Shown: positions 49,754 through 57,821 of the stretch, one piece after another
Layout of the letters: every line of letters begins with the position of its first letter
Numbering within the stretch: the stretch's first letter is position 1
Assembly: GCF_009834535.1 (NCBI RefSeq)
Contig: NC_045712.1
Location: forward strand, 24,986,001 to 25,050,000
Origin: Camelus ferus
Lineage: Eukaryota
Length of the DNA stretch: 64,000 bases
Direction: 5' to 3'
Notes under the pieces: model-generated
The model's input: only the letters and a program-made list of their open reading frames with translations
Databases searched by the model: none
What the model was told of the DNA's origin: nothing
Program-made: the position numbers and the translations under genes

Positions 49754-51601
49754 ATGGCAGCCCACCTGCTTCCCATCTGCACCCTCTTCCTGAACTTGCT
49801 CAGCATGGCTCAAGGCTCCAGGGGCCCTGTGGTACCCAACCGGCCCTTCACCACCGTCTGGAACGCAAACACCCAATGGTGTCTGGAGAAACACGGCGTG
49901 GACGTGGATATCAGTGTCTTTGATGTGGTGGCCAACCCGGGGCAGGACTTTCGCGGCCCTAACATGACCATTTTCTACAGCTCCCAGCTGGGTACCTATC
50001 CTTACTACACGTCTGCTGGGGAACCCGTGTTTGGTGGCCTGCCTCAGAATGCCAGCCTGGATGCCCACCTGGTCCGCACATTCCAGGACATCCTGGCCGC
50101 CATGCCTGCATCTGACTTCTCAGGGCTGGCGGTCATTGACTGGGAGGCATGGCGCCCACGCTGGGCCTTCAACTGGGACACCAAGGAAATTTATCGGCAG
50201 CGCTCACGGTCTCTGGTACAGAGGCAGCACCCCTACTGGCCAGCTCCTTTGGTGGAGGCAGCAGCTCAGGACCAGTTCCAGGGGGCTGCACAGGCCTGGA
50301 TGGCAGGCACCCTCAAGCTGGGGCAAGCACTGCGGCCTTATGGCCTGTGGGGCTACTATGGCTTCCCTGACTGCTATAACTATGACTTTTTAAACCCCAA
50401 CTACACAGGCCAGTGCCCACCAAGTATCCGTGCCCAGAATGACCAGCTGGGGTGGCTGTGGAGCCAGAGCCGTGCCCTCTACCCCAGCATCTACATACCT
50501 GCGGCCATGGAGGGCACAAGGAAGGCACAGATGTATGTGCGGCACCGAGTGAGTGAGGCATTCCGTGTGGCTGTGGGTGCTGGGGACCCTAGTCTGCCGG
50601 TGCTGCCCTACGTCCAGATCTTCTACGACATGACTAACCACTTTCTGCCCCTGGTAAGTCTCCTGTGACCCTGCCCATGTCATAGCCTACCTTGTCTGGC
50701 ATTAGTCCAACAACTGAGGCCACACAGCCCTGGGGCACTTTAGCCTTAGGGCACCTTCATCAATTCCCTCTCACAGTCTTTGAGCACCTGCTGTGTGCCA
50801 AGATCTGCTCGGCACAGACTCAGCATTCATCAGAGAGTCCCTGCCTGCAGGGCACTCACAGGCTAGAGTCAGGGCAAGCCTGCCTCTGGCCACTAGGGTT
50901 AGAGCAGCCCCAGGTGGGGGTTATGAATGATTTGTCCTATCCAATAGTGTCATGTCAGTCTGCTGTGGGGAGGGAGGGAGGCCCCACAGAGCTATGCTGT
51001 CCTTTCTCCAGGAGGAGCTGGAGCACAGTCTGGGGGAGAGCGCAGCCCAGGGGGCGGCAGGAGTGGTGCTCTGGGTGAGCTGGGAGAACACGAGAACCAA
51101 GGTGAGCTCAGGCCCAGGATGGGGGTGAGGGTGGGGGCAGGGGTGGGGCTGCCAGGCTGACCGGGGAGATGCTGGCCCACCGTTTACCCTTGCAGTCCTG
51201 GCTGATTCGCAGGTGAATGCCTCGATGCCCTAGCTGGGCCCATGCCTGGCCGTGATGTCCCTGACACATCCCTTCCCACCTAGGAGTCATGCCAGGCCAT
51301 CAAGGAGTATGTTGACACGACGCTGGGGCCTTTCATCCTGAATGTGACCAGCGGGGCGCTTCTGTGCAGTCAAGCCCTGTGCTCTGGCCATGGCCGCTGC
51401 GTCCGGCGCCTCAGCCACCCTGAGGCCCTCCTCAACTTCAACCCCACCAGTTTCTCCATCAAGCCCATGCCTGGTGGTGGACAGCTGACCCTACGAGGTG
51501 CCCTCTTACTGGAGGATTGGGGGCAGATGGCTGAGAAATTCAAATGTCGCTGCTACCGTGGGTGGAGAGGAACATGGTGTGAGCAGCAGGGCATGTGGTG
51601 A
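49754..51601 (+). CDS. HYAL1: Hyaluronidase 1 (GH56), 435 aa (450 aa from the upstream AUG at 49220)
   Basis: Exons 49754-50653 (900 nt, AVIDWEAWRP), 51012-51101 (90 nt), 51284-51601 (318 nt, ...CEQQGMW*); 1308 nt total. Confidence 0.97.
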
Positions 51602-51869
51602 TTGGCACATGCACACCTTGAGTACCTAGTGCACTCTGGGACTGGCTGTGGCTCTCTCAAGTACAGGCAGTCACACATATCATGGTCACAGTCAGAAGTA
51701 CACTCAGCCAGTCATGAGCCTATGCCAGCACATGCACACGTGCTTACAGACCAGGATAGTTGCATAAGGAGTTAGAGCCTTGGAAACCCACCCAGCATGG
51801 TCAAAAATATTTCTTCCAGAGACACTGAGCAAGTCTTTAAACTTAAGCCATCGTAAGAACTGACACTCA

Positions 51870-52055
51870 TTGGACATCTACTCTTTCCAAGTCCTGTGCT
51901 AAGCCTTTTAAGTAGGCTAACTTAATTGTGCAATCCTAACACGACGTTATGAGGAAACAGGCACACACAGGGAGGGTAAGCACTTTGCCCAAGGTTGCAC
52001 AGCCAGAAAATGAAGGCACTGAGATTCAAACCAGGCTGCCTGGCTATAGAGGCAG
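51870..52055 (-). mobile_element. MIR fragment in the HYAL1 3' UTR
   Basis: GAGGAAACAGGCAC...CTTTGCCCAAGGTTGCACAGC...GATTCAAACCAGG. Confidence 0.6.
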
Positions 52056-52133
52056 AACCCTTTGGCCCCTATTGTGTGTTGATGGTAAACAGCCCTGCGC
52101 AACCTGAATCCGCTCAGAAGTATCAGCCTTGCA

Positions 52134-52139
52134 AATAAA
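52134..52139 (+). terminator. HYAL1 polyadenylation signal (AATAAA)
   Basis: AATAAA about 530 nt after the stop. Confidence 0.65.
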
Positions 52140-52379
52140 GCTGACATGACTCTTGCTTCAAGAGCTGTTTATGGAGCGCGTAATACGTGCAGGCGCTGGG
52201 ATCCAGAAGGCACAAGAAAAGTTCTCTCACTCAGAGCTGATGTCTGTCCGAGGGCGGCTACTTCCCAGGGTGGGGCCCAGATTCCAGGAGGAACTTCCAC
52301 CTGACCAGTCGCACCCTGGACTGGGGCAGAAGCCCCACGTGAGCTGAGACAAAGCGGAGCAGAGGCGAGACCTATCTGA

Positions 52380-52830
52380 GCCTGGGGCGGGGCGGGGCGG
52401 GGCGAGGCGAGACAGAAGCCCAGCCAACCCGAGACAGAGCCCGCGCTCAGTCGGAACTCACTGGGCCTCGATAAGCAAGGACAGGCGGGGCAGAGGTGGA
52501 GCCAGGGCAGAGGCCCGATCTGCGTTGGGGTAGTGTCATGACACTCACGGCCGGGGGCGGGGCCTAGGCGGCGGCCGCGCAACCCGGGAGACACCGGAAG
52601 TGGTGCGCCGCGGGCCGTGACGGCTGCAGTGCGACCGCCGCACCGCTAGGGGCCAGCGCGGGCGGCCGGAGGAGTCCGAGACAGAGAGCGAGATACCGAT
52701 TCGTGCGGATCGTGGACGCGGAGCATCCCGGAGTACGGCGTCAGCATGTCAGTAGTGCCCCCTCCCCACGCTCGGCGTGTTCGTCTTCATTGTCTCCCGC
52801 TCTTCGCGTCTGCCATGCGTACTGTCCTCA
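52380..52830 (+). promoter_or_regulatory. Shared NAA80/HYAL3 CpG-island promoter and probable common non-coding exon 1
   Basis: (GGGGC)4 GC boxes from 52384, ETS CCGGAAGT at 52594-52601; candidate donor GTACGG at 52733 (weak, uncertain). Confidence 0.7.
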
Positions 52831-54456
52831 AGTGACTCTGCCGCCCTGCATGCCCTCTTTGCGTCTATCTTTCCCTCCCAGAGCATGCCGAGCCACACCC
52901 ACCCAAAGTCAGGCTCCCGAAGCTTCCACCCCCAAACTCCACGGTTTGTCACACACTGGGAAGAAGGGGGAAACCGAGGCAGGAGAGACTGCCCAGTCTG
53001 AGGACCCGGGAGCCCCGCCCGCAGTGGGTGGGGTCGGCACAGAATGGGTTAAGCTCGCGGGGGAAGTTTGGGGCTCCAGGCCCAGGGGCGGATCTTGGGG
53101 CTTCCTCCCTCCTGGTCCAGGGGTGCAACTGCTGTGGAGGTGGCTGATGCAGGTGAGGAACTTACAGCCCTCTGAGTGGGACGTGGTGTGAGGGGAGGGG
53201 GCTGCCTGTTACTGACCAGTGTGGAACTGGCCTCAAGCTCAGGGAGCCTTCTTGGGGAGGAGGTAAAGGGGAGCCAGGGCATCCCCTCTGGAGCAGGTGA
53301 GTAGAAGGGTAGGGCCCAGCGGCCACCTGCCACTAGAATACCCCCAGCATAGACCCTCCTGCCAGCAGAGCCTCGGGTAGGATGGGCAGGCATTGGAGTT
53401 TGGAGGCAAGGGGTCTGAGCCCCCAGCCTGGTGGCCGTTGGACACCCCTGTGGATGTAGGAAGGAAGCTGTGGTTCTTATCTACGGTGGCTACGAAACTC
53501 AGGCCAGTGGGGAACCAGGTCTGTAGGAGCCACATTGCTATGTGCGCCTGGCCCGTTGCTACAGCTGCTGGGACCCTTTCTGAGGGGACAGGTGGGTCCT
53601 TGCCCAGTTAAAGTGCCCTGAACTGGGCAGTTTGGGGGAGGGAGCCATGAACTCTGTGTCCCAGGCAGGGAAGGCAATCCAGGCAGGGGAAAATTGAGCC
53701 TGATGGGTGGGTGAATGTTGTCCCAGGATCTGTTAGGTAGTAGGCACGACCCAGGTGGTCAAAAAGGCTGGGACCTGGAGTAGAGAGAGAAGGGTGGGAC
53801 AGCAGAGTTCCTGGGGGTAGCTGTGTTTCCTCCAAAGGGAATGCAGGGGGTTAAGCAGGGGGTTGTGGTGTCTAGTTTGCATCTTCTGTCCACTGGCCAG
53901 CCAGTTGCCATGGTATAGGGCTGGATCCACTGTCCTGGGGAGGACAAAGCTGTAGCCAGAGCAGGCTGAGGCCAGGACTCTTTTGAGTTCTGCCCCAGCC
54001 TTTAGCCCTCAGTCTCTGTCCAGTGTAAGGCAGGGCATCCTGGACCCATCCCCTCTGCTCTCCACCTGAGTCAGCTCCCCCAGGTATAGGGGATGGGATC
54101 CTCCAGGTCATCGGTGCTGTCAAATGAATATGGGGGCAGGGTGCAGCCCACCAGTATGAGGATGTGTGGCCCTCCCTAGCACTCTGTCAGCCACTCTTTG
54201 CCCCAACCCCATCCTCCCTTCTGGCACAGCCCAGCATGGCTGTTGTCCACAGGATGCTCTCTTGTGGTCTGAGGCGATAACACTGCCTGGAGACTGTGGC
54301 GTAACCCCTTGCCTGGGACTGAGCTACCTGCAACCCAGCATGAGATAACCTTGGTTCCTAGCCTGACTCAGCTGAGCCTGGATCCTCCATGTAGGCAAGA
54401 GCTGACTCAGCCCTGGCCCAGCCAAGCTGACCCCTACCCTAGACCCTACATACCAG

Positions 54457-55287
54457 GTGGAGCTGATCCTGAGTACCAGCCCACCCCAACTAACTCTGGG
54501 TCCTGCATGCCAGCCAGAGGTGACCCTGAGATCCAACCTGGCCAAGCTGACGCTGGATCCTGCACGCCAGCCAGAGGAGACCCCAGCCCCCAACCTGGCT
54601 GAGCTGACCCTGGAGCCTGTGCATTGCCGACCTGAGCTCCTGGATGCCTGTGCCGACCTCATCAATGAGCAGTGGCCCCGCAGCCGCGCCTCCCGCCTGC
54701 ACTCCCTGGGCCAGTCCTCAGACGCCTTCCCCCTCTGCTTGATGCTGCTGAGCCCCTGTCCCACGCCCGAGGCAGCCCCCATTGTGGTGGGCCATGCCCG
54801 CCTGTCACGGGTGCTGGACCGGCCCCAGAGCCTCCTAGTGGAGACAGTGGTGGTGGCCCGGGCCCTGAGGGGCCGTGGCTTTGGCCGCCGCCTCATGGAG
54901 GGCCTGGAGGCCTTTGCTCACGCCCGGGGCTTCCGCCGGCTACACCTCACCACCCACGACCAGCTACACTTTTATGCCCACCTGGGCTACCAGCTGGGTG
55001 AGCCTGTGCAGGGCCTGGTCTTCACCAGCCGGCGGCTGCCCACCACCCTGCTCAATGCCTTCCCCAGGGTTCCCTTTTCCCGGCCACCTGTCAAGGCCCC
55101 TAGCCTGACTGCCCAAGCTGCCCTAAGAGCCCCAAAGGAGCCATCATTGCCACCACCCCCTCCCCTGCCTGAGCCCTTGACCGCCTTACCCCGACCTCCA
55201 GCAGGGCCCCCTCCACAAAGCCTGCTGGAAACACAATACCACGACCTGAGAGGATGCCCTGTATTCTGGATGGAAAAAGACATCTGA
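54457..55287 (+). CDS. NAA80: Actin N-terminal acetyltransferase NAA80 (NAT6/FUS2), single coding exon inside HYAL3 intron 1; start codon unresolved (GTG at 54457)
   Basis: Open frame containing the GNAT domain (LINEQWPRSRASRL...VVVARALRGRGFGRRLM...HLTTHDQ), the polyproline PPPPPLP motif and the C-terminus FWMEKDI*. The position equivalent to human Met-ELILSTSP is GTG. Confidence 0.93.
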   Translation: MELILSTSPPQLTLGPACQPEVTLRSNLAKLTLDPARQPEETPAPNLAELTLEPVHCRPELLDACADLINEQWPRSRASRLHSLGQSSDAFPLCLMLLSPCPTPEAAPIVVGHARLSRVLDRPQSLLVETVVVARALRGRGFGRRLMEGLEAFAHARGFRRLHLTTHDQLHFYAHLGYQLGEPVQGLVFTSRRLPTTLLNAFPRVPFSRPPVKAPSLTAQAALRAPKEPSLPPPPPLPEPLTALPRPPAGPPPQSLLETQYHDLRGCPVFWMEKDI

Positions 55288-55472: not shown

Positions 55473-55478
55473 AATAAA
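55473..55478 (+). terminator. NAA80 polyadenylation signal (AATAAA), inside HYAL3 intron 1
   Basis: AATAAA 185 nt after the stop, with a GU-rich downstream element. Confidence 0.75.
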
Positions 55479-56050: not shown

Positions 56051-56231
56051 CCATCTTGAGCTGTGAGAAGCCCATGTGACCCCCTTGGGAACCATGCTCT
56101 TCCCACCTTCCTTCCTTGTGGGGAGGAGCTGGAGAAATCTTCCCACTTTCTCTGTTGAGCAGAAGGTATGGCCATGGCCATGGACTCTAAACTCACACTC
56201 CCTTTCTCCTGCAGGTTTCCATCCCTGGGGC

Positions 56232-57821
56232 ATGACCATGCAGCTAGGCCCGGCCCTGGTGCTAGGGGTGGCCCTGTGCTTGGGGTGTGGCCAGCCCCAG
56301 CTGCAGGCCCCTGAACACCCCTTCTTGGTGCTGTGGAATGTACCCTCAGCACGCTGTAAGGCCCGCTTTGGTGTGCACCTGCCACTGGAGGCCCTGGGCA
56401 TCACGGCCAACCGTGGTCAGCATTTCCATGGCCAGAATATCACCATCTTCTACAAGAATCAACTCGGCCTCTATCCCTACCTTGGGCCCAGGGGCACAGC
56501 TCACAATGGGGGCATCCCCCAGGCTGTGCCCCTTGACCGCCACCTGGCACAGGCTGCCAATCAGATCCGCCACAGCCTGCTACCCGGCTTCGCTGGCCTG
56601 GCAGTGCTGGACTGGGAGGAATGGTGTCCACTCTGGGCCGGGAACTGGGGCCACCGCCACGCCTATCAGGCAGTCTCCTGGGCTTGGGCACAGCAGGTAT
56701 TCCCCAACCTGGACCCCCAGGAGCAGCTCTACAAAGCCCGTACTGGCTTTGAACAGGCAGCCCGTGCACTGATGGAGGACACGTTGCGGCTAGGCCGAGC
56801 ACTGCAGCCTCACGGGCTCTGGGGCTTCTATCGCTACCCAGCCTGTGGCAATGGCTGGCGCGGTCGGGCTTCCAATTACACAGGCCACTGCCATGCAGCT
56901 GCCCTGGCCCGCAACACCCAACTCTATTGGCTCTGGGCTGCCTCCAGCGCCCTCTTCCCCAGCATCTACCTACCACCCAGGCTACCACCTGCCCATCACC
57001 AGGCATTTGTCCGATACCGCCTGGAGGAGGCTTTCCGTGTGGCCTTCACTGGGCACCTACATCCCCTGCCTGTCCTGGCCTACGCCCGCCTCACACACCG
57101 GAGGTCTGGGAGGTTCCTGTCCCAGGTAAGTGAAAGCTGAAGTCTAGGGGTCTGAGTGGGGAAGCATGACATTCTCTGAGTGAAGGGCCTGGAAGCCACT
57201 CAGAGGCTCAAGGTCAAGGGGCCCTGCTCTAGAGGTGGAACCAGATCATGGTAGTGAGCCACGGAAGTTCTGGAAGTTGGATGTAGGCCCAGGTGGATCT
57301 AGCCAGCCCAGCCCTGGCTTAGCAGCTCTTTGCCTCCAGGGTGAACTCATGCAGACCATTGGTGTGAGTGCTGCACTGGGGGCAGCCGGCGTGGTGCTCT
57401 GGGGGGACCTGAGTTTCTCCAGCTCTGAGGTGATCATTGCCCCCTCCAGCCTGCCACACATTCCATGCTGGGGTCCCAGAGTTGGGGAAAGACTATGTCA
57501 GGGCCATGGAGCAGGAGCATTGATACATCCCTCCCCTCTCCTCAGGAGGAGTGCTGGCATCTCCATGACTACCTAGTGGGCACCCTGGGCCCCTATGTGA
57601 TCAACGTGACCAGGGCAGCCATGGTCTGCAGTCACCAGCGGTGCCATGGCCATGGCCGTTGTGCCTGGCAAGACCCAGGACAGCTGGAAGCCTTTCTGCA
57701 CCTGCAGCCAGATGGCAGCCCTGGAGCTTGGGAGTCCTTCAGCTGCCGCTGTTACTGGGGCTGGGCTGGCCCTACCTGCCAGGAGCCCAGGCCTGACCTT
57801 GGGCCTGAAGAAGCAACATAA
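56232..57821 (+). CDS. HYAL3: Hyaluronidase 3 (GH56), 419 aa
   Basis: Acceptor at 56214/56215; exons 56232-57125 (894 nt, [10 protein letters not shown]), 57340-57429 (90 nt), 57546-57821 (276 nt); 1260 nt total. Confidence 0.96.

Follow-up and report, generated by a model that had tools for sequence, protein, structure and literature searches.

We analysed a 64,000-nucleotide stretch of the Camelus ferus genome (contig NC_045712.1, positions 24,986,001 to 25,050,000 of the forward strand; hereafter the window, whose own numbering is used throughout), which holds NAA80, the gene for the actin N-terminal acetyltransferase, and found that camelid NAA80 has no usable in-frame AUG before its catalytic domain. 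The gene is nevertheless spliced at a defined junction that places a TAG in its frame, and the catalytic domain is under purifying selection. From these observations, we infer, with a probability of roughly 0.55, that camelid NAA80 is translated from a non-AUG codon between 54520 and 54610. A preliminary description of this DNA had put forward three explanations for the missing AUG, namely non-AUG initiation, an unseen AUG-bearing exon and a hypomorphic or decaying gene; non-AUG initiation is the only one of the three to survive our analysis, with the start codon itself being putative.

The NAA80 reading frame and its upstream boundary

HYAL2, HYAL1, NAA80 and HYAL3 are consecutive plus-strand genes in the open reading frame (ORF) map of the window, and camel NAA80 occupies its conserved position between HYAL1 and HYAL3, with Glyco_hydro_56 neighbours in all fetched loci. 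The NAA80 frame extends from 54457 to 55287 on the plus strand and comprises 276 codons, the first being GTG and the last the TGA at 55285–55287. Acetyltransf_1 and Acetyltransf_7 both exceed their Pfam cut-offs in the predicted protein, codons 46–276 match human NAA80 (Protein Data Bank (PDB) entry 6NAS, chain N; E=1.7e-124) with the RGRGFG motif kept in the alignment, and Drosophila NAA80 (5WJD) is aligned from camel codon 52 (E=5e-20). Judged by its fold, the closeness of this match and gene position, the camelid gene is the NAA80 ortholog, the predicted actin N-terminal acetyltransferase; it shares with human NAA80 (NAT6/FUS2; PDB 6NAS, 6NBE, 6NBW) the GNAT core, RGRGFG, the proline-rich loop, the C-terminal strand and the location between HYAL1 and HYAL3. 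Because the human and Drosophila alignments begin at codons 46 and 52, respectively, codons 46–95 are part of the fold, which places the ATG at 54742 within it. The features that define this region are:

54403..54405, plus strand: in-frame TGA that closes the NAA80 frame upstream (sequence, alignments)
54592..55071 (codons 46–205), plus strand: GNAT catalytic domain including the RGRGFG acetyl-CoA motif (Pfam, 6NAS match, selection tests)
54742..54744, plus strand: first in-frame ATG, giving a product of 181 residues without about the first 50 residues of the fold
55072..55287, plus strand: proline-rich loop, last strand and stop (structure alignment), the loop being fast in all lineages

Between the TGA at 54403 and position 54742 there is not a single in-frame ATG, so that the lack of a usable AUG before the catalytic domain, as first described, holds, and it became firmer once RNA contigs were considered. 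The individual observations behind it were also borne out: the GTG at 54457–54459 and the in-frame TGA at 54403–54405 are both seen in the sequence, the upstream ATGs at 54254 (8 codons), 54340 (ATG AGA TAA) and 54389 (ATG TAG) all head tiny ORFs, those at 54507, 54644 and 54665 are out of frame, and the first in-frame ATG, at 54742 (LCL-M-LLS), sits inside the acetyltransferase fold in the alignment to solved NAA80 structures. The bases of the GTG are the same in the dromedary (L012) and alpaca (L009) assemblies, as well as in eight Logan contigs (L001–L008) from separate sequencing runs of two studies.

Some variation was seen within the genus and the family. The ATG of the ATG AGA TAA mini-ORF (54340–54342) belongs to the window's species only, dromedary and alpaca having CAGGAG at this place. 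Two Camelus polymorphisms were found among contigs and models, 54769 G>A (Glu to Lys, in a variable loop) and 55078 T>C (Ser to Pro).

Loss of the canonical start sites

To place the missing AUG in its evolutionary setting, we compared a DNA alignment of camel, dromedary, alpaca, hippo, fallow deer, dog and fruit bat (Rousettus) with a start-site survey of about 85 placental NAA80 proteins. Four candidate start positions, here called sites A to D, emerge from these comparisons, and all four have lost their AUG in camelids. Three positions can be given in the window:

54344..54346, plus strand: site A (EMTLAPS), ATA in camelids, ATG in hippo and deer
54457..54459, plus strand: site C, the Met of MELILSTSP, GTG in camelids, hippo and deer, GTA in dog
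54544..54545, plus strand: breakpoint of a camelid-specific, in-frame deletion of 114 bp (38 codons) between repeat units (alignments, protein survey)

Site A is the upstream start in deer, horse and hyena gene models; in camelids, a lineage-specific 2-bp deletion at 54408|54409 additionally breaks the frame behind it. Site B (MQELTL), a primate and rodent start, reads AGG in camelids and in every laurasiatherian examined. At site C, primate and rodent proteins have the Met, and Rousettus DNA has ATG. Primate and rodent NAA80 thus has AUG starts at MELILS and MQELTL, and the camelid gene has neither; both of these Met residues, named for the human protein in the preliminary description, are present in primate and rodent proteins (e.g. 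P0055, P0023, P0013), a comparison of proteins rather than of human DNA.

Site D, the Met of a PEM motif, was removed by the 114-bp deletion, which is common to Camelus and alpaca. Hippo, deer, dog and Rousettus all keep its ATG, which precedes the CADLI motif by about 43 codons, and the Met is near-universal among the placental proteins surveyed. In dog and hippo, site D appears, from the aligned DNA, to be the only usable AUG. Protein models without site D retain another in-frame Met (site A in hyena, site C in colugo and P0047, upstream Mets in tamandua), and the pig model P0026, likewise without site D, has a Met (LTMEP) exactly at the position of camel Leu52, which is encoded by the CTG at 54610. 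This pig Met (UniRef A0A8D1KLR4) may be a replacement start. Across the DNA alignment and the protein survey, camelids alone are without any in-frame Met at the starts.

These comparisons shift the emphasis of the original observation, which had singled out the GTG at 54457 as the key lesion. The GTG itself is real; however, it is not a camelid-specific cause, because hippo and fallow deer also have GTG, indicating that the change at site C is old. Dog, hippo and deer already have GTG or GTA at site C, as camelids do, yet they retain the PEM AUG, which is deleted in camelids. Read from the alignments, what sets camelids decisively apart is the 114-bp deletion of the PEM Met. This deletion also makes the camelid N-terminal extension 38 codons shorter than that of human NAA80, whose repeat-rich extension is dispensable for activity (PMC7141826).

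Tree shrew (Tupaia chinensis, L015, 2560–3000) was considered as a second AUG-less lineage, with a 181-residue model (P0089) that begins at the internal Met, and was rejected, the short model being due to an upstream assembly gap.

Splicing of camelid NAA80 transcripts

Transcription and splicing of NAA80 are evident in many RNA runs. We checked RNA contigs over positions 51500–54405 in four runs (X1–X4) from four studies, in which the following elements were found:

52432..52747, plus strand: first exon common to HYAL3 and NAA80 transcripts (contigs; 5' end approximate, with starts at 52432, 52506 and 52592)
52748..54517, plus strand: NAA80 intron (gt...ag); the contig loose end at 52747 maps to 54518, and the intron is also present unspliced
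54518..54522, plus strand: used splice acceptor, ccagccag|AG (same loose end in X1–X4)

The exon 1 donor (CAT|gtcagt, 52747|52748) is kept in hippo, deer and dog, and the junction 52747|54518 was found in contigs of all four runs. Joining the last T of exon 1 to the AG at 54518–54519 creates a TAG in the NAA80 frame, and the GTG at 54520 is the next codon. In none of the four runs did a contig ending at the exon 1 donor continue at 54456|54457, where an unseen AUG exon had been proposed to join, or at 54252|54253, the other acceptor suggested; the junction is instead 52747|54518. Unspliced contigs (L001–L008) are colinear with the window. A gap in intron coverage in X3, considered as a sign of an internal start site, was dropped, since the whole intron is present in X3 and the gap reflects filtered contigs. 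A minor junction in X1 connects exon 1 (52747) to 55205 in the proline-rich region of NAA80, skipping nearly the entire ORF.

Other laurasiatherians (dog, hippo, deer, bats) have the same exon 1 donor and acceptor region. In a bat-like mammal, spliced transcripts (L018, L019) join the homologous donor of exon 1 to the homologous acceptor, and unspliced contigs of the same animal (L016, L017) confirm the intron; the four contigs were called bat-like from their similarity to Molossus and Pipistrellus proteins. In this animal, the next AUGs after the junction sit at and just before site D, and because its transcripts read so, the common mammalian isoform would consist of exon 1, the TAG, a leader and the site D AUG. 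The ATG of 'GCATGCCA' is usually out of frame, but in L016–L019 a 1-nt difference brings it into frame (MPSEM...), four codons upstream of site D. Further upstream, the frame of these contigs is shifted with respect to other mammals, consistent with an untranslated leader.

The strongest alternative to a non-AUG start is a minor or tissue-specific splice form, in which the acceptor at 54513|54514 would bring in an AUG from further upstream, either from an exon 0 at 51949 together with exon 1 or from an ATG at 53147 next to the donor at 53152. The elements concerned are:

51949..51975, plus strand: exon 0 of the NCBI Camelus models (MRKQAHTGR), which supplies an ATG and lies in the HYAL1 3' region
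53147..53152, plus strand: ATG CAG immediately preceding a further donor (53152|53153) that the NCBI alpaca model uses (models, contig branch)

Gene models of this kind exist for three Camelus species and alpaca (P0001, P0121, P0122, P0125), with 326 aa in Camelus and 358 aa in alpaca, all using acceptor 54514; the Camelus models are assembled from 51949–51975, 52568–52747 and then 54514, and those of C. ferus and C. bactrianus (P0121, P0122) equal the window protein from codon 20 onward. Some use of 54514 is plausible given the CCAG-CCAG tandem acceptor, the ATG at 53147 with its strong donor exists in all camelids, and contigs are no proof of absence. Against this, the sole junction between exon 1 and NAA80 in the contigs of the four runs is at 54518, 4 nt downstream of the acceptor in the Camelus models. 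The same contigs contained no donor loose end at 51975, and exon 0, which lies in the HYAL1 3' region, looks repeat-derived, resembling a MIR repeat. The donor at 53152 seems to feed HYAL3 and not NAA80, as the two-way contig branch fits HYAL3 exon 2 (56215). Contiguous exon 1 itself offers no start, having a TAG at 52564 and no ATG afterwards. Finally, alpaca exon 1 carries a 2-bp insertion that breaks the frame of the Camelus models, and the N-terminal extension of these models is therefore not conserved as coding sequence in camelids. Taken together, we regard such a splice form as an unlikely source of the enzyme. The modelled camelid NAA80 N-termini begin in the repeat-like piece of the HYAL1 3' region (Camelus) or in sequence on the intron side (alpaca) and probably arose because an ATG was forced on the models, and the current NCBI versions are without support from the sampled RNA contigs.

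Two further features lie downstream:

55473..55478, plus strand: candidate AATAAA polyadenylation signal, 3' of the NAA80 stop (from sequence)
56215..56234, plus strand: HYAL3 exon 2, with acceptor 56214|56215 and the HYAL3 ATG at 56232 (contig loose end from the same exon 1 donor)

The joining of exon 1 to HYAL3 exon 2 (AT|G) makes an upstream ATG in the HYAL3 leader.

Candidate non-AUG start codons

We next considered where translation could begin on the spliced message, on which two stretches are of importance:

54520..54612, plus strand: stretch in which a non-AUG start spares the catalytic domain (codon and context scan, extent of the construct in PMC7141826)
54644..54667, plus strand: first AUGs on the spliced mRNA, out of frame and in weak context, those at 54644 and 54665 heading ORFs of 32 and 25 codons

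After the TAG, the in-frame near-cognate codons are GTG at 54520, CTG at 54526, 54538, 54547, 54553, 54595, 54604 and 54610, and ACG at 54550. Four of the CTGs (54538, 54553, 54595 and 54610) are in strong Kozak context, with A at -3 and G at +4. The spliced leader contains at most one tiny upstream ORF. A hairpin downstream of the candidate starts gave a weak signal at 54553 alone (z=-2.2), which we treated as uninformative.

A start in this stretch should yield a working enzyme. Human NAA80 residues 78–308, without the 77-residue extension, are able to acetylate actin in vitro and complement knockout cells (PMC7141826), and the start of this construct corresponds to camel codon 46 in the alignment. 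The amount of NAA80 in HAP1 cells is about 7000 molecules per cell (PMC7864067). Because the human construct is active, initiation anywhere from 54520 to about 54610 should leave the enzyme functional, and with so few molecules present even a small output may suffice.

We propose the following sequence of events. In the ancestral state, HYAL3/NAA80 exon 1 would have been spliced to the NAA80 repeat region, with a TAG at the junction, a short leader and then the site D AUG. A repeat-mediated deletion of 114 bp would then have removed this AUG before Camelus and Vicugna diverged, with the splice retained. The remaining AUGs would have gone earlier or been lost too, as reflected in the GTG at 54457, the ATA at 54344 and the 2-bp frameshift. 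This would have left a nearly AUG-free leader followed by the in-frame GUG/CUG run at 54520–54610, one or more codons of which may initiate, giving a product of about 225–255 residues that equals or exceeds the N-terminally truncated human construct in length or differs from it by a few residues. As the requirement for NAA80 appears small, even inefficient initiation could suffice.

Several points weigh against this proposal. Near-cognate initiation is usually weak, and a scanning ribosome that passes the candidate codons next meets the out-of-frame AUGs at 54644 and 54665. The tandem acceptor at 54514 is just 4 nt upstream of the one used, making a minor AUG-bearing isoform possible, and read-assembled contigs drop rare variants and so cannot prove that an isoform is absent. 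Unspliced transcripts, with several upstream AUGs, are abundant in some runs. Lastly, the test of selection within camelids, described below, is based on few substitutions.

Purifying selection on the catalytic domain

If NAA80 is still translated from a start upstream of 54742, its catalytic domain should bear the mark of selection on protein sequence, including the part that precedes the first AUG. The 276-codon frame is indeed intact, as had been claimed, without a stop or frameshift in the window, dromedary and alpaca. Between camel and alpaca, 11 of the 831 positions of the ORF differ (1.3%), compared with a divergence of 2.0–2.1% in the flanking intron and downstream DNA. Within the GNAT domain (codons 46–205), there are 4 synonymous and 0 nonsynonymous differences (dN=0, dS=0.031), and at the intronic rate about 7 nonsynonymous differences would be expected. 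For the segment before the first AUG, for which a dN/dS comparison had been suggested, camel and alpaca differ in codons 46–95 by 3 synonymous changes and by no nonsynonymous one (small counts), and the camelid stem likewise has no nonsynonymous change there.

Three-taxon branch estimates of omega for the GNAT domain are 0.16–0.29 in camelids, 0.19–0.23 in hippo and 0.09–0.12 in deer, and parsimony assigns 5 synonymous and 3 nonsynonymous changes to the camelid stem, in line with other lineages. Since no nonsynonymous difference was seen where about 7 were expected, and camelid omega is low, this comparative evidence indicates that the catalytic domain is still kept as protein, also in the stretch that precedes the first AUG. 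The proline-rich, profilin-binding loop (55072–55206, codons 206–250) behaves differently: all 5 differences between camel and alpaca are nonsynonymous, which is above the intronic rate and striking even for a loop that is fast in all lineages.

These results bear on a further alternative, that camelids have no working enzyme at all and make only the 181-residue product from the AUG at 54742, or none, the gene being a young unitary pseudogene or a severe hypomorph. Every canonical start is gone, and the intact ORF by itself is weak evidence for function given just 1.3% divergence between camel and alpaca. In addition, NAA80 knockout cells are reported to be viable and human deficiency to be non-lethal (PMC5924898, PMC8599064). 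The excess of nonsynonymous differences in the proline-rich loop could be taken as relaxation; however, the loop is fast in every lineage. The AUG-less state is older than the Camelus/Vicugna split, yet no stop or frameshift has arisen in four species, and the absence of nonsynonymous differences in the GNAT domain extends to codons 46–95, which lie outside the 181-residue product. Omega on the camelid branch resembles that of AUG-bearing lineages and is not near 1, and transcription and splicing persist. Purifying selection on the catalytic domain thus disfavours the hypomorph or pseudogene offered in the preliminary description, which we judge improbable. An error of assembly or consensus, concealing a real ATG at 54457 or simulating the deletion, is refuted, as we found nothing in its support and the bases are identical in the window, the dromedary and alpaca assemblies and eight contigs of independent runs.

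Discussion

Our analysis favours translation of camelid NAA80 from a GUG or CUG codon downstream of the junction TAG, a situation for which there are precedents. EIF4G2/DAP5 (GUG), TEAD1 (AUU), STIM2 (UUG) and TRPV6 (ACG) are known mammalian genes whose main ORFs have solely a non-AUG start. Camelid NAA80 resembles the class in having conserved coding sequence upstream of the first AUG, near-cognate codons in good Kozak context and an AUG-poor leader. It differs in that the starts of those genes are ancient, common to vertebrates or mammals, and experimentally shown, whereas that of camelid NAA80 is putative and would be a lineage-specific replacement of an AUG. Nothing relevant on camelid NAA80 or on a non-AUG start in NAA80 was found in the literature searched, and the camelid gene would be a new lineage-specific case in this known class of non-AUG-initiated mammalian genes.

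More tentatively, and at less than even confidence, the sequence comparisons suggest that camelids may have switched NAA80 to obligate CUG/GUG initiation before the camel/alpaca split, with the enzyme under selection since, probably at a lower dose and possibly with sub-stoichiometric acetylation of actin. To our knowledge, NAA80 is the sole enzyme that acetylates actin. Its loss is reported to alter cell motility and cytoskeleton assembly (PMC5924898), and human NAA80 variants to lead to hearing loss and developmental delay (PMC8599064).

The loss of all AUGs in one lineage while a gene stays under selection is rare, and it offers a clean test, set by nature, of the degree to which near-cognate initiation can keep an enzyme supplied. 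If our reading is true, camelid cells are a natural experiment on NAA80 dose and could serve as a low-dose model.

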